From the NCBI GenBank assembly GCA_037447605.1, contig CM074815.1, positions 1-64,000 of the forward strand: a stretch of DNA of 64,000 bases, in the 5' to 3' direction. The DNA comes from Zygnema circumcarinatum SAG 698-1b. Taxonomy: Eukaryota; Plantae; Zygnematophyceae. Below the pieces are notes generated by a model. The model had not been told where the DNA came from. It was given only the letters and a program-made list of their open reading frames with translations, and did no database searches. The position numbers and the translations under genes were made by a program. Shown here piece after piece: positions 20,189 through 64,000 of the stretch (the stretch's first letter is position 1; each line of letters opens with the position of its first letter).

Positions 20189-20228
<40 letters not shown>

Positions 20229-21590: not shown

Positions 21591-21600
21591 NNNNNNNNNN

Positions 21601-21639
<39 letters not shown>

Positions 21640-21640
<1 letters not shown>

Positions 21641-23465: not shown

Positions 23466-24032
23466 GGCCGCGTGAGGGCGAAGGCGCGACCTGGCGGCGG
23501 CGCAGGCGACGTGGCCCGTCCTCTCCTCTCGGCGCGGGGCGGTGCCGCCCGCGCACGCCCGCCCCTCGCGGCGCCACGTCGTCCCACGCGGCTGGCTGGG
23601 CCACGTGGCTGGCCTTCCGGCGGCCACCGCGACCGGCATGCAGCGCCGGCGGCCGGCACAACCGTCCCGCCAGCTGGCGCCACCCAGCCGTACCGTATCA
23701 TACGGCACCGTACGCGGCCGGTGGGGCGGCTTCATTGAAGGATGCTCGCGGCCACGTGGGTCACTGTACGGCGCGGGACCCGCGGGCGCGGGGGGGCGGG
23801 TTGTTGCCGCTGTACGGCTGCACGGCTCGTCTGTACGGCGAGCGGCGTCCCAATTCCGCGCGCGTGGCCCGCTTCCCTCCGTCGAAGAGCCGTACCGTAC
23901 CGTACCATGCCGTACCGCCAGGAGGGACGACGGAGAAAGGTCCGTTAATCCGACACCAAAAGGAGAACCTTACAGTACGGTACATATCCGGATGCAGAGG
24001 AGTACGGTACGGTACTCCGCATGTGGCAAATT

Positions 24033-30569: not shown

Positions 30570-30830
30570 GCAGCACCCTAGCGGGCAGCCGGGCAGCACC
30601 CAAGCGGGCAGCGGGCAACACCAAGCGGGCAGCGGGCAGCACCCAAGCGGGCAACGGGCAGCACCAGCACCCACGCTGGCAGCGGGCAGCACCCAAGCGG
30701 GCAGCGGGCAGCACCAAAGCGGGCAACGGGTAGCACCCAAGCGGGCAGCACCCAAAGCGGGCAGCACCCAATCGGGAAACGGGCAGCGGGCAGCACACGG
30801 GCAGCAGCGGGCAGCGGGCGAAAGAGAGCG
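30570..30830. repeat. GC-rich degenerate minisatellite built on GCGGGCAGCGGGCAGCACCCAA
   Basis: Repeated GGGCAGCACCCAAGC units, which create spurious long ORFs in several frames. Confidence 0.85.
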
Positions 30831-35300: not shown

Positions 35301-37045
35301 AGAACCTCACGAGTCCTGAGAGCAGAAGAGACCTTCCTACATGCTGCACAAATGGTGGGAGCCATGTTTGCCGCCCTGACTTCTCATATCTGTTGCCATT
35401 ATTATACTGATCAAATTGGGGTATACTTCTCTCCACAGCTGTTGCCAGAAAATGTAGAACAGCAGCCAGGGCTGCTAATTCCCCGCCTTGTTTTGAACAG
35501 CTGTAGGTTTCTTGCTCAACGCCGCCTCTCGATTCATGTCCTTCTGCACCCTCACCGACCTCTCCCATTGCCATTCGCAAGATTAGTCGAGGAGAGAGCC
35601 AAAGGGTGGCGGTGTGCACGAGCGGTAGCGCCACGCGCCACGTCAGACTCTCGCTTGCTGGCGAGCCACCGGCGGTGTCCTCTGCATCGAGAGGGAAGTC
35701 TTCAGAAGCTTCTGAAGCAGGAGGCGGAACAACACGCAGGCGAGGAAGGCCGGAAAATAGTGCTTCAAGAAGCAAGTAGGACTCCCTAGCCAGAGTCCAG
35801 GTTTCTTCAAGGCCCACATTTCTGTCCTCCACATTTTTGTGCTCCTGGTCTGAAGGCGTGACTGGTGTGCTCCTTGCTGTAGTTGTCATCTCACTGGGAG
35901 GCAGAAGCCAGAAACAGATAGAGGGATAGTAGTCGGAAAAGGCGTCCACACAGAGGCCATAGCGAGCGAATACTCGCCACAGCCGCAGCGCTTCCACAAC
36001 CACGGGGCCGTCACCACAGTCAGAAGAACGCCCAGAAGTGAGCGAAGGATTCGCCACACTAACGTTTCCCGCGCTGTGCACCAACAAATTGGATAGTGCC
36101 AGTTGGAATACTCCCGTCTCGAGAAAAGAGTTGGCAATGGTCTGATCTGCCAGACTCAGCACCTGCATGAAGTGAAAACACACATTATACACACAAGAAT
36201 CTCGCATCAGTTCTCATTGAAAAACTACACAGATGAACTCCCTTGAAACCCATGTAGTTGGCTGAATGATGCTGACTCCATGTGGGAGAGAGTAGCCGAG
36301 GCATGCAGAGAGCCCCCCATGGCCGCCCTACCTTGAGGAGACGCACGGCCAGCGCGCGCTCTGAGGAGGAGGAGGAGGAGGAGGCGGAGGCGGAGGGCCC
36401 CGCGAGGAGGAGGCGCGCGCGCAGGAGCGGCAATAGCCGCGGGCAGTGCGCCACCGCGCGGGCGCCCGCAGGGGAGTGCCGCGCAAAGGCCACCAGACAC
36501 TGCAGGAGGGCGCCCTCCGCCCCGCCGCCCGGCTGCACCACCTGCACTCACTCACTCACTCACTCACTCCATCAGCGACTGTGTGTGAGTGAGCCTGAGA
36601 GAGAGAGAGAGAGAGAGGGAGGGAAGACGTTATCACAGCACTGGCGACACCCCGAAGACTCGTTTTTTCAATAGGAGCAGTCTGCAGAGGAGATAACAGT
36701 AGGCAATGAGTAGTCACCGTTCATTTGCGTCACATTTGAAGCCACACAGCTCCAAGTATGTGTTGGTTGGGGGTTGTGTCAGCAAAAGCTAGCCTATCGA
36801 ACCAATCAAGCTAGTTTACCATTATTGCCGCATCCCCTGGAATCTCCACAGTGCATCACAACCGAAATGGTTGCTCCCAGACAGTTCACTTCGAATACGA
36901 TATTGAGGTTACTGGTCATTCCAGCTCACTGTGTGTAGATAGATAGATAGATAGTATGATAAACAGATAGTATGTTAGACATACACAAGGCCCCACATTT
37001 CCCCAGGCAAAGCCCATTCATTGTCCATAAGAAAGGGGCTGTAGG

Positions 37046-37086
<41 letters not shown>

Positions 37087-40000
37087 GCCGGAAGTGGACG
37101 TAAGTGCATCTGATGCCGACCTCGAGGATGTACCGCATGCGAGGGAGGACGCCCATTCGGAGGAGTCCCGCGGCGAAGTCGCGACTCGCCACGTCGGTGT
37201 CCGCCCCCACCGTCCCGCCCTCACTCGCCCCCTCCCCCTCAGACGGAGGGAGAAACTCCGACGGCTTCACCGTGTCCTTCCATCTCCCCGCCCCAAAGAA
37301 CCCGTTTCGAGCACTTGGACGTTGCCGGAAAATGGGACACGTGGCCACTGTCTCCTCTCCACGCCAAAGACCCTGTGAAATCACATCTCCAAACCACAGC
37401 ATTTTGGATCAGTCTTCACGACGAATGGAAATGTTAAAACACTAAAAGGGAGCCCGGTCACTCATACATGGCTGGTTGAACAGGGTGATGCGTTGCCATT
37501 CATGACTGCCGGTACCCATGGCCAGAATGCAGACCTCTTGGGCGTCGAAAAATGCTTCGTTCGCTGCCGAGTTCAAGCAGGTCTCCATGGCTCGAGCAGC
37601 TGCCACCACAACTGTCGAATGCGGGTCGTCGATAGCCATTCTGTAACAAGGAAAGCAGACAAGGATCACTCCCAATCCTCTCCTTGCCAGCTCCCTGCAG
37701 CTCTGCCATAGGGAGCCACTCGCGTCCTTCGCCAGGAATGACGACGAGGGAGGGCCCACAGAAAGTTGTGCAATGGAGTGAATCCCTTTTCTTCTTTATA
37801 GAGCTCTTACACAGTACCAATGCAGGGTCAACAAATAAGCGTTGTAAAGTTTTGCAAACACCAACTTAACGCAAAATAACAGCTCCAGATTCACAATACG
37901 CAGATGGCAGGACATACTCCCTTGCTGGTCTTGCTTGTGGCAAGTCTTCGCTATAAAAATTAAGCAACAAACATGATTGAATGAAACAAGCCCATGTTGT
38001 CCTCACCGCAGCACAACTCCCAGCATGAGCTCCGGGCCGAACGCATACGCCCACACGGCCTGCCAATCCGGGGCCGCCACATGGCGCTGTGGAGGCAGTG
38101 CCAGCAGGGCGAGGGCGGCGGCGGCCCTGGCGAGCGTGTGCGCGAGGAGGCGCAGCGCGGCGGCGCGCTGCGCGGGGAGGCCGCTGCGGGCGAGGGCCGC
38201 GGCCTCGCGCAGGGAGTACCCCGCCCGCCCGGGGGACCCATCCGACCGCAGCAAATCACGTTCCGCCACGTGGCGCACACTCAACTCCCGCACCATCTCG
38301 CCTTCGCTGTCTTGCTTCACACGCGCTGCGCAAGAGACGAAGGTGGACAGAGGTGACGGGCAGGAATAGATCGCAAAATACCGAGGGGCAAATTTGGGAA
38401 GACGTGCAAACAGGGTAAAACAGGGTAAAACATGCTGAGAACAGAAAGGCCATAATAGCAATAGATATCTGGACAGATTTTTCAGGCAGCTTACTGGAGT
38501 ACAGCCGCAAGGTAAAATGTCAAAAAATATAGTGCTGCTTATCCCCTTTTCAAGAACTAATATCCGAACGTCTAGCAAGCACAATTATTAACGACGACAC
38601 TCTTTATGACTTCTGGCACCAATTTCTTCTAAGAGCATTTACCATTCTCATGCTTCGGCTCAAACAGACTGGGAAGCAGACCGGATCTATAACTGCTCAA
38701 GTGCCAGATGCTCACCCGGCAAGCCAGTGCTGTCAGCTCGCACAATTCCAATAATATCCTCCGCCTCATTGGCTGTGGCTAGCGGCACTACGGAGCCATC
38801 CAGAGCAAATCTGATTCCCCTGACAGCCTCCACCCTTTCAGCCCAGTCCTTCCCCAGCAACAGAGGCAATCTGCTTGTAACCGACTCATCACCATCACCA
38901 GCTCCTCCCACACCAACAGGTTGTTCGCCCTCCACAGATGGTCCTACATTCTCAAGCTCAGAAAGCTTTTCTGAATGAGGCGAGTCTCTGCCAACATATT
39001 TTTCTGTTTTGCAGTCTACATCTGCTCGCACACCCTTCATCAGATGCGCGTCAGCACCACCTTCCGACATAGTCACTGGTAACAGCAGATCATCTGAGGG
39101 GAGAGTACTATCCGACGCCATGGAGATCACTTCTGCTGTGTCGCCTGTAATTTCCTGATTGACTTTCAGATCGTTGTCCATCCTTCTTATTGATGTAAGA
39201 GCTTCGTTTTGTTGACTTTCTGTGGAAGACAAGTTGGGCTCACTTCTCTCCATTGGTCTCCTTAACTTTCCTGCTCCACGTTTCCGCAGGGCCTCCAAAA
39301 CTCTAGCTGGCAGAAGCTCTGCAATCTCCTTCTGAGTAGCAGCCACTTCAGCAGCATCCATCCTTGCAATCCTTCTCGAGTTCTCTGCATCAATGTGTTC
39401 CAATTCCACTTCAAGTGCCCCTCTCGCTTGCACGGCAGCAAGCGTACCTCGATGAAGGCTTTTCTCCTCGCTTGACATCCGTCCACTACTGCCCCCATGA
39501 AGCCTGCTCTTAGCTCGAGTGTTCCACGCATCTGTCACAAATACGTCTGTGCTGTTTTCTCTGCCTGGCCTAGGACTAGGAGCTGTGAAGATTTGGGTTT
39601 CTGCCATACTGCTTTCAGGACTCTGTGCTATTTTGTCCAGCCCGTTTTCATCTAAACCTACTCCAGCATTTGAGATTCCCACGTTATCCGCAGGAGCGCT
39701 GAAAGGTTTCTGCAGCAAGCCTCTTTCTCGTCGAAACAAACTTAACTTTCCAGATCCCTTACTTCTACCGATTAGCGGCTGAGCCGCAGACAATGCATCT
39801 GGAGGGGCATCATCCTCGTCTCTGTTTCCAGGGCTGGACGGCTTTCCCAGTGCAGTTTGGGGCTGTAACCGTAGGTTCTGCAGCGAACGACAACATTGCA
39901 AAAAAAATCAGCAACTATAGTTGGAGGCGACTCAAGTGAACATACATTCACTTCAGTTACACAGAGCATGATAGTCTCTTACCTACGAGGGTACGAGATG

Positions 40001-41861: not shown

Positions 41862-42131
41862 CGCCCGCTCGCCCCCGCTTGCTCAGCCCCGCCCCGCCGA
41901 GGTCGGTCGGGGGGGCGGGGGCGAAAGGATGACAACTGTGTACCGTACCGTACCGTACCGTACGGAGTGCGCGAAGGCAGAGGCACCGCACGCCCGCCCG
42001 CCCTTGCACGGGTCAAGGCCGCCTCGCCTTCTCCTCTCGGGCCGGGAGAGGCGGAGGGGGAGGGGGAGGGGGAGGGGGANNNNNNNNNNGGGGAGGGGGA
42101 GGGGAAGGGAAGGGAAGGGGAGGGGGCGGCC

Positions 42132-44818
42132 ATGGCCCTACTGCGTGCGCCGCCTCCGCGCCGCCCCGCCGAGCAGGCCCGCCAGGACGACGGGCCCGCC
42201 TCCCACGCTGCGCTCCGGAGGACCCACGCCGCTCGCCCGTCCACTCAGCAGCGCCGGCAGCCATGCCACACCCCGTTGCTCCCGGGCAACGACCGACTGA
42301 GGGAGGGACGAAGCCAAAGTCGCAGACGAAGTGAAGCTAAACTGTCTCTTGGAAGCCTCAACGAGCGGGAAGTGAGCAGCGTTCCCACCGCGGATGTCGG
42401 CCGTGGTGGCCGCCGAGAGCAAAGCAGGCGAAAAGTGCCCGTTCCAGCGAAGCGGACTGGTTCTGTGTCTGGGAAGCTGAGAAATGAGAAAAGGAAGTCT
42501 CCTGCAGGAGACGTCCTGTACGATTTCAGCCGCAGTAAGGGGGTGAAGAATTGTCCACTTGGAGTTGGAGGTGCTGTTGTCGTCCAGGAGTCATCAAGCA
42601 GGTAGACATGGGGAATGTCGCCGCCATTTTTTCTCATGGAAGTATCTTCGAACGACTGTGTCATCCATCCGTTTCCATGTGCACAACTAATGCGTGCATT
42701 CTTTTCCATGGTGGCAGACTACCGTCCTTTGAATAAAGTATGTTACGTTTGCAAAGTAGTGTACTCTTCGACAAAGAGCGAATCACCTTCAGGTCACAGT
42801 CATCTGGGGTCTGTTCTCGGCTGTTTCGTGTATGTTTTGTTCAAGGAATCGCTGCACTTTGACCTCGCATTTCAGTAAGAACATTTTGTATTCGTCACTG
42901 AACTCTCCAATATCCTTTGGGGTGCATAAGTGGAAGAATGGCGTGTGCGCAATTGCTCCTTCAGAATGAAACTTATCTATCAAGTTGATTCCCGCAAGCT
43001 TGCCTTTCACCAGCGAAAGTTGTGCTGTGTGCGTCTAGTCGTCAGCATTGCTGCAGTTTGTTGCAATCTCTGGATGTTTTGTGAGGGGAATGGCGAACTG
43101 TTTAGTCGTTTAACATGCATTTTGTGGGTGGTATATGTTCAACAGAATTGGAACTCTGCAGGATCATTCAACGTGCACAAGTGGAATCGGACATAAGGAG
43201 CATGGCTCAGCTTCTGACTGCTCTACCTGTAAGCCGAAAGTTCACGTCATTTTAGTTGTACCTTTATGATTTTCGCTCGCATGATTGGCTGAAAATTACA
43301 TTGTTGAGACTGATGAAAAACTAGTTTTCTCGCAGGTGGCATGCAACTACTACCGAAGACGTCGTACCCAAATTTAGCTGCAATGGAGGAAGCTGAGGTG
43401 AACTGGACAGAGGTATTGCTTCTGCACTTCAGCTATTGTGCTTGCAATATGGTGTCCACTGCGTGCACCAAGGGTTTCCCTGAAGCACGCAATTTGCCTT
43501 TCTTCTTTCTAGTCTCGGAGATTCACGTAGTTATTGTGGGAGACTTGCCTTTGGAGAATAACCATTCAACCAGATTGGGATGCTCTGCTGCTCCAAATCC
43601 GCTTGGTCATGCTTTATTCCTGTTGCAGCTCGATGACTGTGGAGCAACATTCCAATTGCGAGAATATTCTTCAGAATACCAGCAGAACTCCAGTGAGCCC
43701 CTTAGGCAGTCAATCCCTGGGTCGAGGTTGGATTTGAGATGTGGAATTGGTGAAAGAGTCGTCCAAACTTCAGCAGCGGGCAAGGTGCCGGATTGGGTGG
43801 AGCGAAGGAGGCAAGCAATAGCTGCACGATTGGCACAGGCGGGAGAACATGAGGTAAGTGTTGAACACTAGTTTCCTGCAACCTCAGTGGAAGGGAAAAT
43901 ATCTTGCTGAGAAAGATGGAGCCGGCTGACCTTGTATTTTCACTGGGTTTTTTCTGTAATCTCCTATTATGTCGCAAGCTGTTTTATGCGTCTCTTCTTT
44001 AGAAGGAAACGGAGTTGCTACGTGCAACCTGAGATTACTGAAACACTGTTTGTTGTGCTAAACTATTTTGTCTATTTGGGGTGCTTGATTGTTTAAGAGA
44101 TCAGGGTGCAGTCTTAGAGGCTCGGCAACGACTGGATGAACGTCTGCGAACTGCTGGTCAGCCGAACCGACGCCAGGGCTCTTTTAGCTTGAGAACGGCT
44201 GTGTCAGGGTGGAAGAACACCTCAATGCTGTCAAGGAAATCACAACAGCGCAAGGAAGATGCACAACATAGGGGAAGAGAATCTCGAGGAGGGCAGCCCT
44301 TTGGTTCACATACGAATGGCACGCGAACTTCTCATCCTTCCATGTACTCACGTGAATGGGCTAGGGATTTGCCTGCTCTGTCGTCCCAGTTAGGTGAAGG
44401 CATAGGGATATGGAGAGGCGACCTAGCGTTCTTGGAGAGGTATTCTGCTATTCAGGAGATTGAGGCAACGCGGGTGAAGGAGTGCGGTGGCAAAGGACTG
44501 GACCAAGCAGCAATTGATGTCCTGACGAGGGAGACATGGGTGGAGGGTTTGGAAGTGAAAGAGCCATGGTTTGGTTGGCCGCGCTTGGGAAAGCTTAAGC
44601 TAGTGTTAGGGAGGCGGACTCCATTGGGCGCTCATGAAAGCAAGACCGCGCCAGAGGATGGCGTGACAACGAGGGACTGCCCCATCTGTCTCGACAACTT
44701 CACAGCGGGGGAGGTCCTCCTCCTCTTGCGGTGCGGCCACAGGTTCCACGAGGGCTGCATCGTGCCGTGGTTGAGTCACCAAAGGCGGTGTCCTTATTGC
44801 CGGTCGACCGTCACGTAG
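42132..44818 (+). CDS. RING-H2 E3 ubiquitin ligase (RHY1A-like); last exon certain, 5' exon structure uncertain
   Basis: The terminal exon 44105-44818 encodes LEARQRLDERL and the C3H2C3 RING CPICLDNFTAGEVLLLLRCGHRFHEGCIVPWLSHQRRCPYCR. The preceding exon ends GAG|GTAAGT at 43853 in phase 0. The ATG at 42132 is the first plausible start. Confidence 0.8.
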
Positions 44819-45288
44819 CAGCCATGGCTTGGCACTCTCCACAAATAGAAATAAGTGTTGTATAGGAGGAATGTCCCTCACTCTCATAAGGTATAATGTA
44901 CATTTCCTGTGTGCTACAGCTTCGGAGAAAACAAGATGTCACAGCGTTAATGCATTTTTCCTCCTGTTGAGTGTCAAGCGCTTGTGCTGTCTAGGGCGAA
45001 GTAATTGCTTACACAGGTTTTAAATTTGAAGACACATGCTTCTGCACCACTCGCTGTGTGATCCTGCTTGCGCAGTCCGCCCTCCCCGCGGTGTCATAAT
45101 CGTTTGACATCACCTCTTTGCCTGGTATGCGGTATTTCCAAACCATGGCACCATGGCACAACAACAGTTAGAAAGAATGAAAATCTAGTTAATTCGAGAA
45201 AAAACTGAAACAGAAAAAAAAATGTTCGACAGCAAACTAGCTATCCATATCTAGCTCTCCAGCCCGCACGTCGTCGCCCCTTGCCTGC

Positions 45289-45330
45289 CTGCTCCTGCTC
45301 CTGCTCCTGCGCCTGCTTCTGCTCCTCTCT

Positions 45331-45369
<39 letters not shown>

Positions 45370-45370
45370 C
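45289..45370. repeat. (GCTCCT)n-type microsatellite upstream of ABCB29
   Basis: Tandem CTGCTC/CCTGCT units in the GC-rich 5' region. Confidence 0.85.
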
Positions 45371-45439
45371 GCGGAAGGGGTATACATAACGGTAGCGGGC
45401 GGCCAGCTTGCCTGCCTGCCGGGCCGCCCGCTATCGAGC

Positions 45440-48400
45440 ATGCGCGCCTCCTCGCCCGCGCTTGCGCTTGCGCCTCCGCCAGAACGTAGCGCCTGTCTCG
45501 CCGCCAGCATCCGCTGGGCCTGCCAGGGGCGTCTCCCCCGGTGCACATTCACACACATATGTCGAAACCCTACCCAAGCGCTGGCACTGCGGAAATCAAG
45601 AACTTGCACCTGGCGGCTCGGAAGACGCTTGTTAGGCAACCATGGGAACAAGCTTGTGACACACACTGTCAGAGCGTCAGATGCCATTCACGATGCTGAA
45701 CACCGGGCATACAATCTCCTCAACAGCGGTGAACTGACAGCGTTTTCTGCATCTGATTCTAATGACAGCCAGCAACAAGCATCAGCGTCTGTCACTTCTC
45801 AATATGGACAGTCAGTACTTTCCGACAAGCCAGGGAGAAGCCTGCAAAAATTGCTGCCGTTCCTGATGCCCTTCACTCGACAAATAGCGCTTGCATGGCT
45901 GTGCACAGTTGTGGCGGTTTCATCTCTTGTCCTGTTTGTGCCACGAATTGGAGAAATCTCAGCTGTACTGGCCGCAGGCGAGTTGTCAACCGTGGTTCGG
46001 AAGGGAGGGCTTCTCCTGGGGCTGGTCGCAGCGAGGGCAGTCGCTCAATACTGGCAAGATGCGTTGCTTTGGCAAGTGGCTCTCTCAGTCACGCTGTCTC
46101 TTCGCTCTTTTCTGTTCGAGAGGATACAGCAGATGGACATAGCTTCGTTTGAAGGCCGAGATGCTGCTGCCTTGGGCGATATTGCATTCCGTATTACGTC
46201 GGAAGCGGAGGATGCGGGAGACACAGTATTTGCCATGCTACATGTAAGAGCAACATTAAGCAACGAATGTGACTTTCAAATTAAGAGCCTTATCGTTAAA
46301 GATATCGTGGTCGCCTAAGTGCACATTGCGGGTTATCAGAATCCTCAGGAGGGAAGTTTGCTGCAGGCAAGGGAACAAGCTGATGTATGGGAAGAGAATA
46401 AGATACCCTTAAAATTTTGTAGGACCACTCAAAAGGCATTCCTTGAAAAACTGATTTGAGCCGTGCAAGCAGCACCTGCCGTGTAATTTGCTAGATGACA
46501 CCTTTGGACTATGGTGGTAGTTAGATATTTTCTGATACAGTAAACCCGCAGCAGACCACACACTGATCACTTAAAATCTGGCAATCCAAACGTTAGGTCT
46601 TTGCAAACTTATTAGTGCGTAGGAAGGGCCCTTTCTAGGTTGTTAGTTCGTTCATGCACCCTTCATAGGAATGACAAGAATTGAACGAGGTGATGGAGTT
46701 GTGCAAACGTGTATAGCAATGTTGCGGGAAAAATGTCATAAAGCGCCAATATAGCGAATATGACACTATCTCATATTTTGAGTGATCTGTGCTGCAGGCT
46801 CTGCTCCCCTCCGTGCTGCAGCTTGGAGCTATGGTTGTGCGCATGATCGCACTCAGCCCGCTGCTTACCCTGGCCACATTCTGCGTATGCTGCCTGTCCT
46901 GGAAAATTTTGGTCACCAATGAATTCTATCTGCGAAAGAGCCTACATACATGTGAAAGGGTTTCTTGAAAAATCTTTCGGACTGTGTTAAAGGAACTTTG
47001 AAATAAAGCCGCATGCAGCCTTACGCTGCAGAGCCAAATGAAACGTCATTCTTGAATGTTTGGACCATTGTCTTCCTGTGAAGTAGGTCGTGCCAGGCAT
47101 GGCCATCGTAATCGCCCTGTTGGGAGAGAGAGTACGACGAATATCCCGGACAGGGCAGGACTCCATGGCTGCACTTTCCGCTTACATGAACGAGGTCTGT
47201 CCTCTTGCTATTGATTTGATGCCCTTCCCGCTGTTGTATCGTCTCTGCAATCTTCAAACAGCATGCAGTCACCCTTGCTCGCTTCCACAAGCTGCAGCCA
47301 CTGTGAAGCGCCTTTTCCATTTCTAATCACAGTTCCTCAGCCGTTTCCAGCTCTGAAGGCAGCGAAACTGGATGCTTTCATGTGTAGGTCCTGCCAGCCA
47401 TGATGGTTGTGAAGGCTCATGCAGCAGAGGATTTCGAGAGCCATCGATTTCGTGAGTTAGCAGAGGCGGACTGCTCGGCCAGACTGCGCAAGAAGCGCTT
47501 GAAGGCGCTCTTCCCGCAGGCCATCACGGGCGCATACGCGACGGCCGTCATGACTCTGCTCGCTCTGGGGGCGTGGGCCATAGCGCGCGGCAACTTCTCC
47601 GGCCCGAAGATGGTGTCCTTCATAACATCGCTCGTGCTCCTGGTGGAACCTTTGCAGGTTGGTTGTACTCTTGCGTTGTTTTTTGGAAAGGATGGTGTGA
47701 TTTGGATGCAATAATGTGTGTTTTCTCTCTCTGCTGAATCTCTGACAGACTGGGTGGATGTCTCATCAGGCTGTGGGCAGTGCCTACAATGAGATTAAAC
47801 AGGGAGAGCCGGCTGTGGAGCGCCTGCTGGTCCTTTCTGCAGTCAATCCCAAGGTGCCAGCTACTTGCTGGGCTTCGTCCAAACTGTTCCATCACAGCTG
47901 TCTTGCCATTCCTTAGGCTACGTGATACAGACGTTTGGAAGGGTATTTCGACTTGCGCTTTTACGGCTGGTTTAGAGAGGGATGCCGGGTTGGTGGTGCA
48001 GGTCGTGGAGGCTGAAGATGCGCAAGAGCTAGGCCCCGTGGAAGGCAGAGTGGACCTGGAGGGAGTTAGCTTTGCATATGAGGAAGGCGGCCCTCTCGTG
48101 CTCGACAATCTCTCCTTGAAGGTCATTCCAGGAGAGACGGTTGCTCTGGTGGGGCCCTCCGGCAGCGGCAAATCTACTGTGCTGAAACTGCTGCTGCGTC
48201 TCTACGACCCCTTGCAAGGTACAAGTTGCTGCAAATGTGTAGGCAAGCTCGCAACGTTAGTTTGACTGTCACGGTTATGCCTCATTCTTGCCTCACCCCC
48301 TCTCTAAGAAAGCATACGTGCATGTTACATAAGTGTGTTGCCTGAAAGATTTCCACGGTCTGACGAGCTTTAGCCTTTGCATTGCTTCTGGCACAGCACA

Positions 48401-49633: not shown

Positions 49634-50722
49634 CTCGAGCGGAGTCGTGGCTGCCTCTCAGGGCTTGCCTCCTCTGCCAAGTGTGATGGTCGGTCGATGC
49701 CAGCACCTGCTTGTGACAACCACTTGCAATGAGGAATGAAAATGAATGAAATGAAATGAGGTGGTGCGTCCAAAGTGTTCAGTTGCTGGGAAGAAAACAC
49801 CGAATGTCGAGGGGATTTGGAGCTGCGTTCGACCTGTCTACGACAACGTCGATCAAAACGAATGTGCCGCATCGTCATTGGTGAAACCGCCTGAAGGGCG
49901 TCGAGACAGAAAGGTGCCGCAGAATCTCATGGCATGGCATGTCACGGACAAATTCTGGCACCCTGGAGTGCTATGCGGTGCTAATCACTCGGTAGAGAGT
50001 ATGAGCACCACACTTTCATGTAAACAGGGGCAGCCGATCAAACCGTTTTTGATGATTGCATCATTGTGTTGAGTTGCCATGCCATGCATTAGCCGTTCAG
50101 AGCAGGTGGCCATCCATCCATCCCTCCCTCCCATCCCATCCGGCGCGGCCAAGTCGCGGTACGGTACGGTACGGTACGGCACGGGGCGACTGCAGCGCCG
50201 AGCGCAGCGTGGCTCGTGTCCGGCTCCCTCCGCCTCTGGGGGAGGGGGCCGCCATCATTATCATCCATAATCCATCTGGAGAGAGCTGAGCGCTGCGGCC
50301 ACGGGCGGGCGCAAGCGTACGGACGGGCCGGGCCGGGCCCGCCGCGGTACCGCTTCTCAGCGCGCGGCACTGCGCCGCCACGTGGCGTGCGCGGACTCGT
50401 CCACTGGATTGGAGGCCCGCTCCAGCGTGGCAGTCCGTGGCGGGGCGGGGCGATGCGGGACCCCGCGAGGGAGGGGAAGGGAGGAGCCATGGCCTCGGCC
50501 CCAGCCCTGGACTGACTGCGCCGGGCGGCCAGAGGAGGAGGGAGGGAGGTTGGGAGGGAGCACAAACGCGGGAGAAGCATCGCCGGTGCGTCCGCATCGA
50601 CGGCGGCTTGAGGAGGCAGCTCAAGGGATGACTTCGATTTAGAGACCCTCCCCCGTTGAGGGGCAACCATTATACATGCGATTGGACCAAGATTCAACTC
50701 TGTGTCTGCTCTTCTCTGAATC

Positions 50723-53700
50723 ATGGCTGCATTCAATCAAGAAGACTTAGATTTCCTACAGGTACGTAGTGCCATTCGCTTTTGCGGCTTTTCAACTGAA
50801 ATGGCGGAGCTATTCGTAGTATTAAATTCATTCGAAGTCCAACCTCGGGCCCTCCGTATAGGAAGAGGCTGCGTGTAATGGACGGACCTCCACATCTTCT
50901 GAACTGTCCTGAGCGACACCAGCACTAGTGCAAGGGAGGAGGTCCTCAGGTTTCACAGTGCATGCGTATATTTTGCAGTTCCTTAGCCACAAAAACGTTA
51001 GCACCAGTAGGAGCACATTGGCAGCACTGTAGGTCGATGAGAAGAGTACGGTGTCTTGCACGAGCTATCTTAAGTAGATAATTAGCTTCTTCGAAAATTC
51101 TGCAGTGAAAGGCGCGATGGTCTTGATACGTTTTCAAATGTGCAAGAGGACATCTTTAATGCAGCATACAGCATGTGCTACATCACTTTGCCAGGGCTCT
51201 GAGAGTAGAGTGAGCCCCGGACCAGTCATGTATGAACAGCTCAAGCCAGAGCAGAGTTTCGCTTGTTTGACACTTTGGCTTGTTCCCTGTTCGAACTGCA
51301 TGCCCACTGGCGCAAGATGTATACCGGTGGCAATTCATGAGTCTTTTTCGCTCACCAGTTTCTTAGTGCAAAAGGCAAATTTTCTGGCGAGACAGGAGAC
51401 AGATATTCAAATGTGGTTCCTATTCTCAACCACCATACATCAACCGGACCTGTAGGTGCATCGACCTAGATATTCTTTTGAGGTAGCAACGTGATTCGTA
51501 GCCTGACTTCTGGCTGCAGGCTCGTGCAAAGCGGTGGCTGGAAGCAACCTTGCATCAGCCGCTACCAAAGGAGGAGAGCTTGTCAGCAGTGTTGGCTGAT
51601 GGACAGATCTTGTGAGTTCTTAGGCGCACTCATGTTCACATTCGTATTCAAAGTCGCGCAATTAGTCCTTGCGCAATAAGGTTTGAGCCTGTATCACTTT
51701 ACGAACTTTTCACCTCAAAAGCAAAAGTAAAGCAGGTCTGACGTTTTGGAATGCATATTGAGTGTGTAAGGAACTAGACACGCTTTACGCACATTGTATA
51801 AAGGTTTTTCTCGTGTTTGTAGGATTTCTTGCACACTAGTTCGAAGATATTCTTTTCGCGATCAAGCAACTCTGGCAAACGAAAAACCTGCTCGTATGCA
51901 GAACCTCAAAGGGTTGAAAGTGGGACTTCAAGATGTACTGAATCAGATTGCTGGACGTTTATGCAGGGCAAAGGTAGCTACAGAAATCTGGAAGCTGAAG
52001 CAAAATCACAATGGCGACAGTCATATGAGGACATCTAGCACAGCTCTTGGACCACATCCTTCTCGATCTGCAACAGGATGGTCACGCTTGGCAAATGTTG
52101 AAGTATTTTTGAAGGTATAGCTGCAATTACGCCTATTTGTCTAGTTATTTTCCGCACATAAATTAGCTACTTTTGTCCCGGGAGAGGATACAACATGATA
52201 AGCTGCTATGTAGTAAATCATACAATCATACTCTGAGTGCTTTAAACGGACATGGTTGCCCTAGTGAAGTTCTCTCCAAATAGGAGGGAAAAAAACGTTT
52301 CCATTTAACCTCCTACGGGTGCTTACTGTCCAATACACAAGCATGAAAAAAATTCATATCAAATTTCTTGATATCGCAGATGTGTAAAGATATCGGGTTA
52401 CCGTCAAGTGATTTGTTCTCAGCGACAGATGTGATACAAGAGAAGGAGATAAAGAGATTATGCCTGTGTTTTCGAGCACTCGCAAAGAAGGCACAGGCTA
52501 TGCATCTAAAGGTACAGTGGCGAACGGCCCTCTTTTCCAAATGTTCCTTGTTAGATGAAAGTGATGAATGCAAGCCAGCTCCGAAAGTCCAAATACTCCT
52601 ATGTTTACATCATGTATGCAGCCAGATTAGACTGCTTTAGTATGTTCATTTATTTCGGTCGCATTAACTTTCGCTCACATCGACGTAGGTCATGTCAGGA
52701 AACAAGCCCTGTTGAACATGGAGTAAAAATTGTAAACCACAGTTTTCTCCCCTAGCCTATGGATAAATTGCCAATTCGGAGTATGAATAGGAGAAGCAAT
52801 ACTTGCTCTGAAAGCTATCAGACAGTCAATAAAGCGAATCTGTGAACATAAAGCACGTTACCTCTCTCAACTCTAGGGCAACTGCTGTGCATGTCTTCCC
52901 TTTCCACACTTTCTTTACGCGAGCTACTTCGATATGTTCTTTGTGTCACCTGATACTTGACACTTGCAATTGCTTGTGCTTCCCCCGCTTTCAGAAATGC
53001 CTTGAGAAAAGTAGTTTCTATCGATTTTGTGTGTGTTTTACAACCAGTCTTCCGCAGCTCTCGAGTTCCCTTTCTCGTTGGTTATTGAAGCATGGTAAGG
53101 ACCTAATCTCTGTTTCGTTCGGCTGTTATCCAATGTAGGTGCCTGATTTTGACGATACAAGCTCATCGCTTGTTCGGCCCCGTTCAACGGGACTTGTGGA
53201 ATCAGCCAAGAAGGATCTTCTAGAATCTACAGCCACACATGAAAAGGCTCCTCCTTCTGGAGTGGGCAGATTGACAATTCCGGAAGAGCTGCTTAAAGAG
53301 CAGGTATTTTTCTGCATGCTTCTTTGGGCTGAACCGGAACAGTGAGTAAACATTGTCAGTCCTATCCTGCTTTGGATTTAAGTATGATTCGGTCTAGGCA
53401 AGGGTGAATATATGAAGGATCAACGGCGAGATGCGTTTGTACATGCGCTAACGTGGTGATCCACAAACACTGTCTTTTGCGTTTGCTTTCATTATGCAGT
53501 CTGGGAACCATGAGCCAGTTGATTATGGGAGATATCGAGGGCTGCCATCCTCTACAAGCTTTTCACCTGATAAAGTGTGTCAACGAAACTCCGCAAAGTA
53601 CTCTTGGCCACAATGGAGGCTTTGTGACTCAGAAACTGGAGTTTTATTGCCTTTAATAAGTTCATAGTGAGTTAAGTTCAATGTCATCGGTTCGCAGCAG

Positions 53701-54403
53701 ATTGTCAAGGATTTTCCCTGTGTAACCTTCCAATCAGTCTTGAATTCTCTTCGACATCAGTTCCTCACGCATTCGTCATAACCTTGTTACAGCCCTGTTC
53801 GCGTATCTCTTGTGGATGTAGGCAAGAAGCTCGAAGAAGACGAACAAGGGGTCAACCGCAGGCCGCAATCATGAAGAGGCGCGGCGCAAGAAGCCATGGG
53901 CTGTAATTGCAGTCGGAGCTTTTTGCCTAGTTGGAGCTGCTGCCCTATTGCTGTCCAAGAGTCGGAGGTAAGGAGTATGAGCATGCCAAACAACTTTTAT
54001 TTCATTTTTCTATGAAATTTGAGGTGTATGCAGGGAGCATCTAGGGATTGCGAATGTTATATGATATGATATGTTTTGATATGTTTTTTCTGCAGGTAGC
54101 GAGTGATTTTTGCTCTTTTCATTCGGAGCCTGGTGCCATTCACAGGGAGCTAGCCTCTTTGAAGTTTTCATTGTCACTGTGAATGGGTGCGAAGCATCTG
54201 TGATTGCTATCTAAAATGGATTGTTACTTCTCTGCAGGTCCCGGACGTACCGAGTACGTCAGGGAGACACATTGTATGACATCTCGAAGAAGGTGATGAT
54301 TGAGGATTGGAGAAAACTGCATGAAAGTAACCCCCATGTGGCGGATCCAGACCTTATCTATCCTGAACAAACGCTCCGCTTGAAGCCAGGAAACAAACGC
54401 TGA
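50723..54403 (+). CDS. About 295-aa protein: N-terminal calponin-homology domain, single transmembrane helix, C-terminal LysM domain
   Basis: Seven phase-consistent GT-AG exons: 50723-50761, 51520-51611, 51967-52114, 52380-52511, 53139-53303, 53822-53967, 54238-54403 (888 nt). CH domain: ARAKRWLEATL...VLADGQILAKVATEIW...LANVEVFLKMCKDIGLPSSDLFSATDVIQEKEIKRLCLCFRALAKKA. TM helix: WAVIAVGAFCLVGAAALLL. LysM: YRVRQGDTLYDISKKVMIEDWRKLHESNPHVADPDLIYPEQTLRL. Confidence 0.85.
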
Positions 54404-55374
54404 ATGCCGTTATTCGTATCGTCGTATGGGGTACAGCACCCGAGCTCTGTGTGTTGGGTTAGTCTCTCGCCTCTGGCCTTCTTGGTGTGTGTGCTCTTTA
54501 AGCGGGCCATTGTGGTAGAGTAGATCATATTGGCTTATTTCGCTAACTTTTTTTTTTCCCCAATTATCTGGGCCTTAAGGTTGACCAGATTTACGAAGCT
54601 CTGAAAGAGTTTCTCAGTGCGCCTGCTGTACAGAAAGCTGCTGAGGGTGTCCGAGCAACCGTGTAGAGGGTTTTGCCATAGCGAGTTCACCATGTGTCCA
54701 GGCGGCGGTGCAACCACCAGACAGCCCGCCCAGGGCCTGCGTTGTACTGACTCGCGGAGGCCGGCATGCATGCATGCATACTTCAGCCTCCAGCTATCTG
54801 GCAATGAATGCGGTGCAGGCACAGCACAACGTAGGGATTGGCTTGGGATAGCCAAAGGACTTGGTTTGAAGGGATGGTTTCAAAGATATAGACGGCAGAT
54901 TTGTGGTCTGCTAAAGGCACACAATGAGGGGTATCGTTTTTAAAAGAAATTTTCCACAAAAGGGAAGCAAAAATATTCGTAAATTTGATATCGACACAAG
55001 TTTTTTGGTGACGAGAAGATCAGCTCACGAATACGTACAGATTCTGAACTCGTTTCCGAGACGAACCTTCCCTGCAGTGGATAATTTGACATCCTCTACT
55101 GTAATAGGGCTTATCATTTTTGAGAAGATTCTCTTTCAGGAAGTGACAAAAGCCAGTACATGCTTCCTAGGGAATCAACTGTAACCGCGAAAGCAAAAAG
55201 TATTGCTTTCAAAAGTCACCTGTAAGCGAATCCCAAATGATTTTCTTAAACTTGGCAAGCCCTGCGGTACACACGCTAGAACACGAGCTGCAAGGCCAAC
55301 CACGGAAGCTATCGTGGTCGAACCTCCAGTAAGTCACGACTCCGGAGATGCATAAGAGTGAATTCGACCACTCT

Positions 55375-55640: not shown

Positions 55641-55658
55641 GATGTTCGCTATGCGCAG

Positions 55659-55742
55659 TGTCAGGAAGGGGGTTCGAACCCCTGCCCTCTATCGAGGACC
55701 AGAACTTGAGTCTGGCGCCTTAGACCACTCGGCCACCCTGAC
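55659..55742 (-). tRNA. trnL-CAA: tRNA-Leu (anticodon CAA), intronless, long variable arm
   Basis: GTCAGGGTGGCCGAGTGGTCTAAGGCGCCAGACTCAAGTTCTGGTCCTCGATAGAGGGCAGGGGTTCGAACCCCCTTCCTGACA: acceptor stem GTCAGG/CCTGAC, anticodon stem CCAGA/TCTGG around CTCAAGT, and T-loop GTTCGAA. Confidence 0.97.
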
Positions 55743-56039: not shown

Positions 56040-60431
<4,392 letters not shown>

Positions 60432-60844
60432 CGTCCTCCCTCCTGTCATTATGGAGGGAAACTCACTCTCTTTGCGCCATCTCCCGCCAACACAACATTC
60501 CCCTCTCCCTCTCTCGCTCTTCGTTTTCACACACACACCATATCTTGCGCTCTCTCATCTTTCGCTGCTTAGCAGCGCAGGAGTTAATCTTACCTGTTAC
60601 AGGTAAGGCGAAAAAGAGCCGCCTTCCATGTGGCGGTGCAGCAGCTCCAGACGGCGCCCAGCGAGCTGAGCGGGGCCATGTTGTGTGCGTTGTGCTCAGG
60701 TGGACATGTTTCATAGCGGCAGTTGAACAGGACTTCTGTTCCTGGGGGTTTTTTTTTTTTTTTTTATCTGTACTATTGTATTTGTCAAAAATAGTTTTTC
60801 GACTTCTATGGTATCCTTTGTTGAGGTTGGAACGAAGTAGAGCT

Positions 60845-61270
60845 GCCTGCCCGTCTGCCCATGCCAATCTACCCGTCTGCCCATGCCAATCTACCCGTCT
60901 GCCCATGCCAATCTACCCGTCTGCCCATGCCAATCTACCCGTCTGCCCTTTGGTCCATCTGCCAGTCTGCCAATCTGCCCGTCTGCCCGTCTGCCCACCT
61001 GTCCGACTGCCCATCTGCCCGCCTGCCCGTCGGCCCGTCTGCCCATCTGCCCTTCTGCCCATCTGCCCGTCTGCCCATCTGCCCTTCTGCCCATCTGCCC
61101 GCCTGCCCATCTGCCCGTCTGCCCACCTGCTCACCTGTCCGACTGCCCATCTGTCCTGGCCGCCTGCCCGTCCGTCTGGCCGTCTGGCCGCCCATCTGCC
61201 CATCTGCCCGTCTGCCCGTCTGCCCATCTGCCCATCTGCCCGACTGCCCGTCTGCCCGTCTGCCTGCCGA
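60845..61270. repeat. CTGCCC-based minisatellite: 4 copies of a 22-bp unit, then a degenerate 8-bp array
   Basis: CCCGTCTGCCCATGCCAATCTA four times, followed by CTGCCC(A/G)T units. Confidence 0.9.
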
Positions 61271-61903
61271 CGGCCGCCCGGCGAACGAGCACACCGCGCG
61301 AGCAGTCCACGGCCACCCCGTGACGTCACCGGCATATCTGCCCTCCAGGCCCCAGCGCGCCGCCGTGACGTGACGCGGCGTGACGGCCGACGGCGAGTAC
61401 CGCAGTCCGCCGCCGGGCGGCGCCACGTCGGACGGAGGGGGGGGATCCGCCGGGCGCCTTTCGCGTCCACGTCAGTGCCACGTGGCCGTCGGAGGTGCCG
61501 CGAGGCGCGCGGTGGGCCCGCTGCGACGCGGTCCGACGTGGCGCGGCGGGCGGCCAGCGCGGCCGGCGCTATCCGGGCCCCCCCCGATCGGGGACCGTAC
61601 GGTTGGTAAGTTGGCCGCTGCGCCGCGTCGATGTTCGCGTAGTCCGGAAGCGGTATCTCGTCTCTTCTCCTTCGCTTAATGTCGGAGCGAGAACATGTAC
61701 GATTTTCGAAATCGTTTGTGTTTATTGAATTGTAATGTGAAAGGTTGGCACTGCTCTGCTATGCGATGCTGTGGGGCGGGCGGGGCGGGGCGGTATAAAG
61801 CGGGGGGGGGGGGAAACGGGGCGGGGTATAAGCGTGCAGGCAGGCAGGCAGGCAGGCAGGCAGGCAAGGCAGGCAAGGCAGGCAAGGCAGGCGGGCGAGG
61901 AGC

Positions 61904-64000
61904 ATGGAGATGCAGGTGGCAAGGCGCGCGGCGCTGCTGGCGCGGCATCTCGCCGCGCCTGACGTGGAGACGACGCACCTGTCTGCCCTTGAGAGCGCAC
62001 CATGCCTTCAGTACATGCCCCCGGAAACACATGCTGGTAAGGCCTCATCGAACTGCCGTTCCTTCCTCTCTTTTTCTTCAACACAGTAAGGTGTCAACAC
62101 AGTAAGGTGACAGGTGTTGGTTTCTGGAGCTCTTTCTTCCTGGTGCCCATCAGAGCTTGCTCGACCACTTCTGCGTATTTGAGGTGTTAGGATTTGGGAA
62201 GAGTGGATTGAAATGTTTTTAAACGTATTTTAAATTCTGCTCTCCGCTCTTGAAGAGGTCCGCCTGCGCCCGTCGGCGAACCGCGCTCTTGGAGCGATAT
62301 AGCATTCTGTGTTTCGTGGATTGATTTATTTTGTGGGCTTTTTAGGGAAAGCAACTTTCAGTCCTTCCATTCTGCGCGGAATGCTTGATTCCGATGGAGT
62401 GCGGATGATAGACGAAGTGTTCGGCCTTTTCGAAAAGAACAAGATATTTTGGCCGAAAGGAACTCCCCAGGGCGGACAGTTGTACACTTCCATGGACTAC
62501 AATTCGACCAAGGAGGAGCAGCGGGACGTGACCTTCAAGCGCATTTTGTTTATGAGAGATCACGGCTACTTCAGGAACTGGCTGACAACCGATGATCCGG
62601 AGGTGCTTAAGCAGAAGTCAGCCATGCATGAAGCGATTGGCATTTACGATCACTCTATGGGCGTCAAGCTCGGCGTGCACATCCATCTCTGGTAAGTGCA
62701 GCTGCTGTCCTTCGATGGATTGGCTTTTAGAGGCACCTCGAGCCCCACGGACACTTCGATTCAAAATCTGAAGCATGTATGTATGCATGGTTTTGCATTG
62801 CGCGTTGTTGGTCGTTTCTTAAGCGACCTTTACAAACTTGTCATTCCAATCTCCTCTGACGCCACCACTTCTAACGGTGGGCAGGGGAGGCGCTGTGAAG
62901 TATCTGGGAACAAAACGGCATCATGACAAGTGGCTAAAAAGGACTGAAGACTATGACGTTGCTGGTTGCTTTGCACTCACAGAGCTTGGACATGGAAGCA
63001 ACGTGAGTGCTGTCTTTCTGCTCGGCTTCAGTACCTCCGATGCTGTATGGACGTTTCCGTTGCAAACAAACGAAGTGCACATACTTAATATGAACTTCGC
63101 AGTGTTCGGCCAGCTACCTGGAGGCACGCTAGGTTTTCTAACCAGAAAATTTGTTTGCTGATCGGAAGCGTCAGTCGAGATGATTTCTTTTTGTTTGTGC
63201 TGCGTTTAGGTCCCTAGGCTAAAACTGTTATTTTGACGAAAGGGGATGGCTCACATGGAGCAGGTGCGTGGAATTGAAACAATAGCGACGTACGATCCAA
63301 GTACTCAGGAGTTCATTATTACCACTCCTTCTGAATCTGCGCAGAAGTACTGGATAGGCGGTGCAGCACAGGTGAGACCTTGCTGTGCATGAAACCGTGG
63401 ACGCTTTTAGTGCAACGAATATATGCAATAGGTCCATCATAGGTGTGGCTATGGCTCCTGCAGCTGCGCTTTTTTTTAACTTTCATGATTTTTTGACCGT
63501 TGAGTAAGATTCTTCGTTGAAATCTCTCGTTCAACATAAGAATCCAGGCAGTAATTCTTTCTTTGCTTCTGGATGTGCAGCATGCAAATCATACTGTGGC
63601 GTTTGCACAACTGCACATCGGCGGAAAGAATGAAGGTGTACACGCTTTCATCGTTCAGATTAGAGATGCCCAGAGCAGAGTATGCCCGAGGATTCGCATT
63701 GCAGATTGCGGCCATAAGATCGGCCTCAATGGCGTTGACAACGGCCGGATTTGGTGAGCTCGCAAATTCATCGAGAACTGGTGGGACTTGACCATTGTGA
63801 ATTGCCACCTGGCGACAGCCAGTCGCCGCTTGCACCTTAAAGCAGGTTCTTGAGATGCTTGGAGATGCATGACTTGACTTTGGACAGGGCTGAGCACCTT
63901 GTACGAGGTTCTGCAGGTTTGACAACGTTCGCATACCACGTGAAAATCTTCTCAATGCGGTTGCTGATGTATCTCCGGACGGACATTACCAGAGTGCCAT
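61904..64000 (+). CDS. ACX3: Peroxisomal acyl-CoA oxidase, ACX3-like, with an N-terminal PTS2; truncated by the window end
   Basis: PTS2-like [116 protein letters not shown]. Exons 61904-62036, 62346-62691, 62885-63002, 63264-63371, 63581-63753, 63917 to beyond 64000. Confidence 0.95.

Follow-up and report, generated by a model that had tools for sequence, protein, structure and literature searches.

A Zygnema Gene Combining CH, Transmembrane and LysM Modules: A Candidate Tether between Cytoskeleton and Glycan

The first 64,000 nucleotides of contig CM074815.1 of the streptophyte alga Zygnema circumcarinatum SAG 698-1b (assembly GCA_037447605.1), which constitute the window analyzed here, contain at positions 50723 to 54403 of the + strand a gene coding for a protein of 320 amino acids (aa), in which a calponin-homology (CH) domain is followed by a linker, a single transmembrane (TM) segment and a C-terminal LysM domain. 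It is highly probable that the gene is real and that it has this architecture, which is found again, end to end, in a full-length orthologue, P0041, from another streptophyte. As to function, the domain order suggests a protein anchored near its C-terminus that may tether the cytoskeleton to a glycan, with the plastid outer envelope as the most coherent site; this is the reading that is favoured here, tentatively and at somewhat less than even odds.

Gene Structure

The CH-TM-LysM open reading frame (ORF) was assembled exon by exon from positions 50300-54900; it starts with an ATG at 50723, ends with a TGA at 54401-54403, and is divided into eight exons by seven introns, all of the GT-AG type and with consistent phases. 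Exon 1 (50723-50761, aa 1-13) carries the start codon and has 10 of its 13 residues identical to P0041. Exon 2 (51520-51611, aa 14-44, ending in phase 2) codes for CH helix A and for the LADGQIL motif, and shows 65% identity with P0041 residues 11-44 in a tblastn comparison; exon 3 (51967-52114, aa 44-93) comprises the CH helix that comes after LADGQIL, a serine-rich variable loop and the first part of the WSRLANVEVFLK helix. The C-terminal CH core is encoded by exon 4 (52380-52511, aa 94-137), the most conserved stretch, with 81% identity to P0041 over aa 81-134. The linker extends over exon 5 (53139-53303, aa 138-192), which includes the motifs VPxFDD, VESAKKDLLES and IPE(E)LLKEQ, and exon 6 (53500-53574, aa 193-217). 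Exon 7 (53822-53967, aa 218-266, also ending in phase 2) contains the basic juxtamembrane stretch, the TM helix and the start of the positive region after it; the hydrophobic segment, WAVIAVGAFCLVGAAALLL, is located at 53897-53953 (aa 243-261). Exon 8 (54238-54403, aa 266-320 and the stop codon) encodes the LysM tail, in which the domain itself (Pfam PF01476) occupies 54248-54382 (aa 270-314). All these features lie on the + strand.

An in-frame stop is present at 50717, two codons 5′ of the ATG, and another one is found ten codons upstream of the start in the P0041 contigs; hence, no longer N-terminus is hidden in exon 1 or, for the orthologue, in the message. A longer version of exon 3, which uses the acceptor at 51823 and would remain in frame to give 368 aa, was rejected, as P0041 is devoid of those 48 residues and is collinear only with the acceptor at 51967.

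A preliminary description of the locus, made by a model from the DNA letters and a list of open reading frames, had placed the start and the stop at these same positions, and both hold; its seven exons and about 295 aa have to be replaced by the eight exons and 320 aa reported above. The order that it proposed, a CH domain, a linker, a single TM segment with basic flanks and a C-terminal LysM, is confirmed by the Pfam models PF00307 and PF01476 and by hydropathy, and the motifs RRKKP-WAVIAVGAFCLVGAAALLL-SKSRR and YRVRQGDTLYDIS...PDLIYPEQTLRL occur exactly as first noted. The LysM exon is read in the same frame as the CH exons, as indicated by the uninterrupted ORF in transcript-like contigs of the relative.

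Just 5′ of the gene, positions 50089-50600 are GC-rich and contain GGGCC-type repeats; this stretch has the appearance of a GC-rich promoter or leader.

The Orthologue and Selective Constraint

P0041 was retrieved by an exhaustive phmmer search, in which the LysM exon was compared with 1.84 billion representative proteins. The resulting list consists mostly of bacterial proteins with multiple LysM domains, whose repeat scores add up, and the matches were re-ranked by their best single domain; P0041, which is 320 aa long and has its LysM at the very C-terminus, 71% identical to the LysM exon, is the only orthologue among the 150 matches listed. The two proteins align from end to end, 320 against 320 aa, with 57% identity (BLASTP E 2e-126) and without an insertion or deletion at any exon junction of the Zygnema gene.

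The P0041 ORF is intronless on contigs from seven sequencing runs (SRR8128902-08). Five of the seven contigs on record were compared: they are 1.7-2.3 kb long and identical over about 1.6 kb, and Illumina adapter sequence stands at the beginning of one of them. They carry an unusually long, AT-rich 5′ leader (about 640-710 nt), which is identical across the runs (positions 1-637 of contig L001 and the same stretch in L002-L005). Because the contigs are uninterrupted and the Zygnema gene has seven introns, they are best read as assembled transcripts. On the longest contig, L001, a convergent ORF at 1780-2310 of the - strand ends in a PB1 domain of the ARF/Aux-IAA type (AUX_IAA, 43.9 bits), which indicates that the P0041 species is a streptophyte; the P0041 message and this ORF meet in a CT-rich stretch of low complexity. 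No synteny was found between the 64-kb window and the P0041 contig, the PB1 neighbour being without a counterpart in the window.

The overall ratio of nonsynonymous to synonymous substitution rates (dN/dS) between the Zygnema gene and P0041 is 0.13, with dS saturated at about 2.4. The constraint is unevenly distributed along the protein: identity reaches 81% in the C-terminal CH core, 64% in the CH domain's N-terminal part (dN/dS 0.18) and 70% in the LysM (dN/dS 0.11), and falls to 48% in the linker, to 34% in the juxtamembrane region with the TM segment, and to 23% in the CH loop (dN/dS 0.74); for the C-terminal CH core, the linker and the juxtamembrane-TM region dN/dS is not computable. Across a long divergence, the two end domains, their order and the overall length of the protein have been preserved under purifying selection.

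The CH Domain

The Pfam model PF00307 recognizes residues 1-140 of P0041 with 32.0 bits (cut-off 26; E 1.5e-7), over profile positions 8-107 of 109. The same model is unreported when the Zygnema exons are scanned singly and when P0041 is scanned at full length, at E values up to 1; full-length domain scans can thus miss this CH domain, and this may explain why the precomputed annotation lists the LysM alone. The assignment in Zygnema is based on an N-terminal profile, A2, built from exons 1-4 and P0041, and on the 64-81% identity to the CH core of P0041.

In a phmmer search of the PDB, the best solved match of the P0041 CH domain is the type-3 CH domain of GAS2 (GAS2 CH3, 9kbx_A; E 1.1e-6), to which it aligns over 121 residues with two one-residue gaps only, the loop between the long helices being equal in length; calponin, transgelin, IQGAP1, Rng2 and Vav3 come after GAS2 in the ranking. 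Profile A2, which includes the Zygnema exons, returns the same ranking, with E values of 3.8e-6, 9.6e-4 and 3e-3, and its matches are all CH domains; even exon 4 alone matches residues 121-157 of 9kbx_A, with E 0.04. The significant or near-significant PDB matches are nine in number, namely GAS2, calponin-1, calponin-2, calponin alpha, three entries of IQGAP1 and two of Rng2, and no chain of a spectrin-type actin-binding domain (ABD), of EB1, of Ndc80 or of Nuf2 appears among the PDB matches of the CH region. On these comparisons the N-terminal domain, at about aa 12-134, is classified as a type-3 CH domain of the GAS2/calponin/IQGAP-like kind, with a variable, serine-rich loop.

Structure prediction was of poor quality: AlphaFold2 gave a predicted local distance difference test (pLDDT) score of 36 for full-length P0041 without an alignment and of 53 for the CH region with A2. 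A Foldseek search with the CH model returned 9kbx_A first, with a TM-score of 0.34 and E 0.025; this is not significant and is not counted as structural evidence.

Entry 9kbx represents GAS2 CH3 bound to F-actin, and GAS2 CH3 alone binds F-actin (PMC12084551). The contacts are made by the ABD1 hook (aa 13-31), which is required for full actin affinity, by F108 and F109 of ABD2′, and by T129, E133 and R144 of ABD2 (PMC12084551). When these positions are mapped through the alignment, F108 corresponds to W83 and R144 to a lysine, so that the aromatic and the basic residue are kept in both orthologues. Binding of the CH domain to F-actin is plausible, but not assured.

The LysM Domain

Exon 8 matches PF01476 with 35.3 bits (cut-off 20.9; E 1.1e-8) over profile positions 1-42 of 43, and the LysM of P0041 matches the same model with 29.9 bits. 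The domain begins 8 residues after the TM segment and is single, without any cysteine or N-glycosylation sequon. Models of the receptor type remain far under their cut-offs, LysM2_NFP scoring 15.4 bits against a cut-off of 36. After re-ranking by best single domain, the nearest non-orthologous LysM domains, at about 36 bits at most, occur in proteins that also carry Rpf-type transglycosylase, M23 peptidase, phage tail lysozyme or TIR-CHAT domains. The solved relatives are those of LytE, 6ve2_O, Kbp/YgaU, SafA and TsaP; the best solved single-domain match is 6ve2_O, with 29 bits, and Kbp reaches 23 bits. The lack of cysteines, the low score of the receptor model and the kinship with domains of bacterial wall enzymes all agree with the view first taken of it, and from its sequence the domain is assigned as a single LysM of bacterial type, not of the plant-receptor type.

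Both orthologues retain the motifs GDTLYDIS and NP..(D/N)PDLI(Y/F)P, whose elements GDTL and N-P...P-D-L-I-Y/F-P are common to the bacterial relatives that bind peptidoglycan; this pattern of conservation argues for a putative ligand site that has been retained. A scan for possible bacterial donors yielded 72 loci from many phyla, with 35-56% identity over the best matched segment and 50% or less where the match was near full length. No cyanobacterial LysM occurs among the 72 loci, in a pattern scan that covered one genome per bacterial or archaeal species and is biased by its patterns. No donor lineage can be singled out for the LysM, which is not long enough for tree building.

Membrane Segment, Flanks and Targeting

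Each of the two proteins contains one hydrophobic segment only, at aa 243-261 of 320 in Zygnema and at aa 246-265 in P0041. Its mean Kyte-Doolittle hydropathy over 19 residues is 2.46 and about 2.1, respectively, and no other stretch exceeds 1.4; on the Wimley-White scale, the means are 0.32 and 0.52. The Zygnema helix is moderately hydrophobic and rich in alanine and glycine; its flanks of 15 residues have net charges of +3 (N side) and +5 (C side). It is directly followed by SKSRRSRT, the P0041 counterpart being TKRQRYQT, and lysines and arginines in the 15 residues after the segment number six in Zygnema and five in P0041. The tail beyond the membrane measures 59 residues in Zygnema and 55 in P0041. 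On the N-terminal side, no Pfam family is matched by the linker, which measures about 100 aa and keeps three short motifs. The first ten residues are acidic and stand just before the first CH helix, the CH domain starting at about residue 12; the acidic N-terminus and the lack of a second hydrophobic segment argue that neither a signal peptide nor a transit peptide is present, in agreement with what had been proposed from the DNA at the outset.

In plants, the signal that directs anchored proteins to the chloroplast or mitochondrial outer membrane consists of a moderately hydrophobic transmembrane domain (TMD; Wimley-White below 0.4) followed by at least three positive residues, and the positive region keeps the anchors off the route to the endoplasmic reticulum (ER); the rule was derived from N-terminal signal anchors and from tail-anchored proteins with short tails (PMC8836251). 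Some tail-anchored proteins of plastids rely on an RK/ST-rich motif (PMC8836251; PMC8644595). By these standards, SKSRRSRT placed after an Ala/Gly-rich TMD would fit a plastid or mitochondrial outer-membrane signal, and TKRQRYQT of P0041 would fit it less well. By definition, the TMD of tail-anchored proteins is followed by at most about 30 residues (PMC8644595); both proteins have a single TMD toward the C-terminus and no N-terminal signal, but their tails are longer than this. The protein is therefore best described, as far as its sequence allows, as a predicted type II protein with a C-terminal anchor, and not as a tail-anchored protein in the strict sense.

Proposed Function

The absence of a signal or transit peptide, together with an N-terminal part of 240 aa that starts with a folded domain, suggests that the CH domain would remain in the cytosol and that the LysM would be pushed across the membrane. 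There, 8 residues from the bilayer, the LysM would lie flat against the far membrane face and hold a polymer containing N-acetylglucosamine (GlcNAc), and the CH domain would hold a cytoskeletal filament; the likeliest one would be F-actin, given that GAS2 CH3, the nearest relative of known structure, was solved in its F-actin-bound form. The arrangement would follow the logic of a nesprin/KASH bridge, with the LysM in the place of the KASH peptide. That the protein acts as a trans-membrane tether of this kind, from cytoskeleton to glycan and irrespective of the membrane, is close to an even call.

As for the site, to our knowledge, among the spaces bounded by an outer membrane a ligand of LysM, namely peptidoglycan, occurs only in the plastid intermembrane space in non-seed streptophytes; combined with an anchor signal of the outer-membrane type, this makes the plastid outer envelope the most coherent location. 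The more specific proposal that the protein resides in the plastid outer envelope and has peptidoglycan as its ligand is, on present evidence, rather doubtful. The same reserve applies to the full picture of a bridge resembling the linker of nucleoskeleton and cytoskeleton (LINC), in which an outer-envelope protein would sit with its GAS2-type CH domain on F-actin and with its LysM on plastid peptidoglycan in the intermembrane space: a model that is more probably wrong than right.

Several observations weigh against the plastid tether. Among the actin contacts of GAS2, F109 is replaced by a serine, T129 by an arginine in P0041 and by a serine in Zygnema, and E133 by a serine and an alanine, respectively; the ABD1 hook has no counterpart, just 11 residues preceding the aligned region. 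Not every type-3 CH domain that occurs singly binds actin. With respect to targeting, the tail is about twice the limit of about 30 aa, so that the rules established for tail anchors may not transfer; the P0041 TMD, at 0.52, exceeds the limit of 0.4 given for organelle-directed signal-anchored (SA) proteins, and basic flanks are typical of mitochondrial and peroxisomal anchors too. Finally, if the protein had a general role in serving plastid peptidoglycan, orthologues would be expected in the annotated model plants that bear peptidoglycan, and none was found in the collection searched.

The alternatives concern either the membrane or the partner of the CH domain. The protein may be a type II protein of the secretory pathway or plasma membrane, whose external or lumenal LysM senses or holds chitin, peptidoglycan fragments or a GlcNAc-bearing glycan and whose CH domain is connected to the cortical cytoskeleton; this corresponds to the kinase-less surface sensor that the preliminary description had also considered. 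The architecture would fit it equally, with the N-terminus in the cytosol and the C-terminus outside, the ligands of plant LysM proteins are best known at the cell surface, the TMD of P0041 is fairly hydrophobic (Kyte-Doolittle about 2.1, Wimley-White 0.52), and with 55-59 residues after the TMD a late co-translational or SND-type insertion into the ER is conceivable. A surface location is nonetheless improbable, as the LysM is unlike the modules of plant surface proteins and, being cysteine-free, devoid of N-glycosylation sequons and only 8 residues from the bilayer, would reach only ligands that touch the membrane; moreover, five or six lysines and arginines would have to cross the ER membrane, and such regions, placed after a moderately hydrophobic TMD, divert anchors from the ER (PMC8836251). 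About equally improbable is an anchor in some other membrane (mitochondrial outer membrane, peroxisome, ER or nuclear envelope), in which the CH domain, as the working part, would serve organelle positioning as an adaptor of the cytoskeletal or scaffold kind, the LysM being a small folded plug or a protein-interaction module that binds no polysaccharide. The very narrow distribution would fit such a lineage-specific adaptor, eukaryotic intracellular LysM proteins without a known glycan ligand exist, and the dibasic pair in the basic stretch after the TMD (RRS in Zygnema, KRQ in P0041) fits the plant mitochondrial outer-membrane signal (PMC8644595); however, the LysM ranks second in conservation within the protein (70% identity, dN/dS 0.11) and keeps the motifs of its peptidoglycan-binding bacterial relatives, a pattern in favour of a ligand site that has been retained.

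A tether might also be correct in its outline and the CH domain bind microtubules or nothing cytoskeletal, in the manner of EB1/Ndc80 or of calponin, in which actin is bound at a site other than the CH domain. The functions of CH domains vary, the ABD1 hook of GAS2 is missing here, and the residue differs at three of the five core contacts; against this, the PDB matches include no EB1, Ndc80 or Nuf2 and are all type-3 CH domains, the best of them bound to F-actin, and the aromatic residue of ABD2′ is present as W83, its absence from EB-type domains being the reason given for their weak binding to actin (PMC12084551), so that this version appears distinctly unlikely. Least probable by far is an artefact, that is, an ORF that arose by chance, a chimera made in assembly or a gene in decay. 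The support for splicing does come from contigs of a relative rather than from a transcript of the same species, and the Zygnema protein itself is not in the protein collection searched; but the seven canonical introns have consistent phases, both end domains score above the curated Pfam thresholds, a full-length orthologue is present in seven runs, and dN/dS is 0.13 with dS saturated. The orthologue contigs, the collinear exon model and the dN/dS effectively refute an artefact.

If the model of an outer-envelope bridge to plastid peptidoglycan were true, it would couple the relic wall, and hence the inner envelope and the division site, mechanically to the host cytoskeleton; the protein would be the first one known to link plastid peptidoglycan to anything outside the organelle, and a eukaryotic substitute for the bacterial connections of the outer membrane to the wall, which have been lost. 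Plastid peptidoglycan is required for plastid division in mosses, and genes for its synthesis are reported in ferns and in some gymnosperms. Besides the synthesis enzymes and DipM, we know of no proteins that touch it; a LysM predicted to lie against one membrane face, with a cytoskeletal domain on the other, is thus a concrete candidate for a link from the wall to the outer envelope and the cytosol. Were the protein located at the cell surface or in another organelle, it would still represent an undescribed, kinase-less wiring of LysM to the cytoskeleton. The significance is limited by the fact that the family is seen in two streptophytes and that every functional statement is inferred.

Relation to Known Proteins and Distribution

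The likeness to the metazoan GAS2 and GAS2-like proteins resides in the type-3 CH domain, for which 9kbx_A is the closest solved relative, and homology is restricted to this one domain. The GAR domain is absent, no Pfam family beyond CH and LysM being found in P0041 or in the exons, and the protein is not a member of the GAS2 family; the C-terminus of GAS2 binds microtubules and dimerizes, whereas here it is made of a TM helix and a LysM. With nesprin/KASH proteins and calmin the protein shares the layout of a cytosolic CH domain, a linker, a C-terminal TM segment and, across an outer membrane, a small domain presumed to take hold of a structure within the envelope, which is an analogy only. 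Unlike nesprins, which have a CH1-CH2 pair and spectrin repeats, it has one type-3 CH domain and no spectrin repeats; no KASH family was found in the Pfam scans (exons at E up to 10, P0041 at E up to 1), and the C-terminal ends, …LRLKPGNKR and …IRLKQ, are not of the KASH type, the far-side module being a LysM. CHUP1 would have the same cytosolic task as that proposed here, linking the plastid outer envelope to actin; it differs in having an N-terminal anchor, an actin-binding region that is not a CH domain, and nothing in the intermembrane space.

Among LysM proteins, DipM is nucleus-encoded and acts on plastid peptidoglycan; it was located in the intermembrane space of a glaucophyte by immuno-electron microscopy, and moss DipM1 was found at the chloroplast surface, with a location in the intermembrane space inferred by the authors and no predicted transit peptide (PMC4015805). 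DipM is therefore a precedent for a nucleus-encoded LysM of bacterial type working on plastid peptidoglycan, as proposed here. However, it is soluble, of cyanobacterial descent, and has several LysM repeats and an M23 hydrolase domain, whereas the present protein has one LysM, a membrane anchor and a predicted cytosolic CH domain; Pfam scans of the exons and of P0041 revealed no M23 (LytM) domain of the DipM/NlpD kind. The LysM domains of 6ve2_O/TsaP and Kbp/YgaU have the pattern W..L...NP.I.(D/N)P.LIYP in common with the one described here, and the role of 6ve2_O/TsaP, an outer-membrane component held to the wall beneath, matches the role proposed in plastids. TsaP and Kbp are bacterial periplasmic proteins that are exported by means of signal peptides; the Zygnema LysM, instead, belongs to a eukaryotic, intron-containing gene and is fused to a eukaryotic domain predicted to be cytosolic. 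Plant LysM receptors (LYK/LYR, LYP/CEBiP) possess a signal peptide and three LysM domains bridged by disulphides (CXC), in contrast to the one cysteine-free LysM without a signal peptide found here. Animal LYSMD3/4, too, cross the membrane once, have one LysM and lack a signal peptide; their LysM is N-terminal to the TM segment, that of Zygnema C-terminal. LYK/LYR, LYP/CEBiP, LysMe, LysMn and LYSMD3/4 all share the LysM, and none of them has a CH domain.

Searches for further members, for which the queries were P0041 at full length, the CH region of P0041 and, in the shorter length class, a CH profile, found only P0041 itself. They covered proteins of 77-245 aa and of 176-560 aa and need shared five-residue words, and distant, longer or fragmentary kin may exist; the protein collection was compiled from public genomes and metagenomes and has NCBI and UniRef as two of its sources, and the presence in it of the proteomes of peptidoglycan-bearing model plants is unconfirmed. 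A scan of JGI metagenomes revealed no family member. The initial suggestion that angiosperms have proteins with a similar CH domain and a remnant of the LysM finds no support in the searches of these two length classes, nor does the expectation that the family tracks plastid peptidoglycan across Viridiplantae, as no other orthologue emerged from the collection. No architecture with CH and LysM in a single protein was found in the searchable literature. The protein is accordingly a new combination of well-known modules, without a described counterpart in the searchable literature and known from two streptophytes.

Other Features of the Window

A tRNA-Leu(CAA) gene is located at 55658-55742 of the - strand (Rfam, 54.7 bits, and ARAGORN), 1.25 kb 3′ of the stop codon of the CH-TM-LysM gene and before a gene for a plant-type calcium-dependent protein kinase (CDPK). 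The first coding exon of the latter is at 56469-56897 of the + strand, and the gene continues onward; the exon matches Pkinase with 76 bits, and its best solved match is “Calcium-dependent protein kinase 3” (9vhu_A, E 1.3e-35), far ahead of animal kinases. A second tRNA, a tRNA-Ala(TGC) of 100 nt at 27176-27275 of the + strand, was reported by ARAGORN only and not by Rfam at the gathering score; it may contain an intron, be a pseudogene or represent a false call.

Upstream of the CH-TM-LysM gene, an RPAP1 gene at 33418-39901 of the - strand includes an unusually long single ORF of 2.8 kb that carries the TPR_RPAP1 region; RPAP1_N is encoded in an ORF upstream of it. An ORF at 44081-44818 (+) codes for a RING-H2 finger (zf-RING_2, 54.6 bits), and another one at 45281-46318 (+) shows a weak, sub-threshold match to an ABC-transporter membrane domain. 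RPAP1, the RING-H2 ORF and the CDPK are marks of a eukaryotic genome, and the CDPK indicates a plant or another member of the green lineage.

Six runs of exactly ten N, either assembly gaps or masking, are found at 3551-3560, 12805-12814, 14051-14060, 20179-20188, 21591-21600 and 42080-42089, none of them inside the CH-TM-LysM gene. GC-rich islands at 20001-24000, 30001-32000 and 60001-62000, in addition to the stretch at 50089-50600, have 63-66% GC and long overlapping ORFs on both strands, the body of the CH-TM-LysM gene having 44-49% GC; one of the ORFs in these islands, at 22941-23735 of the - strand, contains a kinase fragment.

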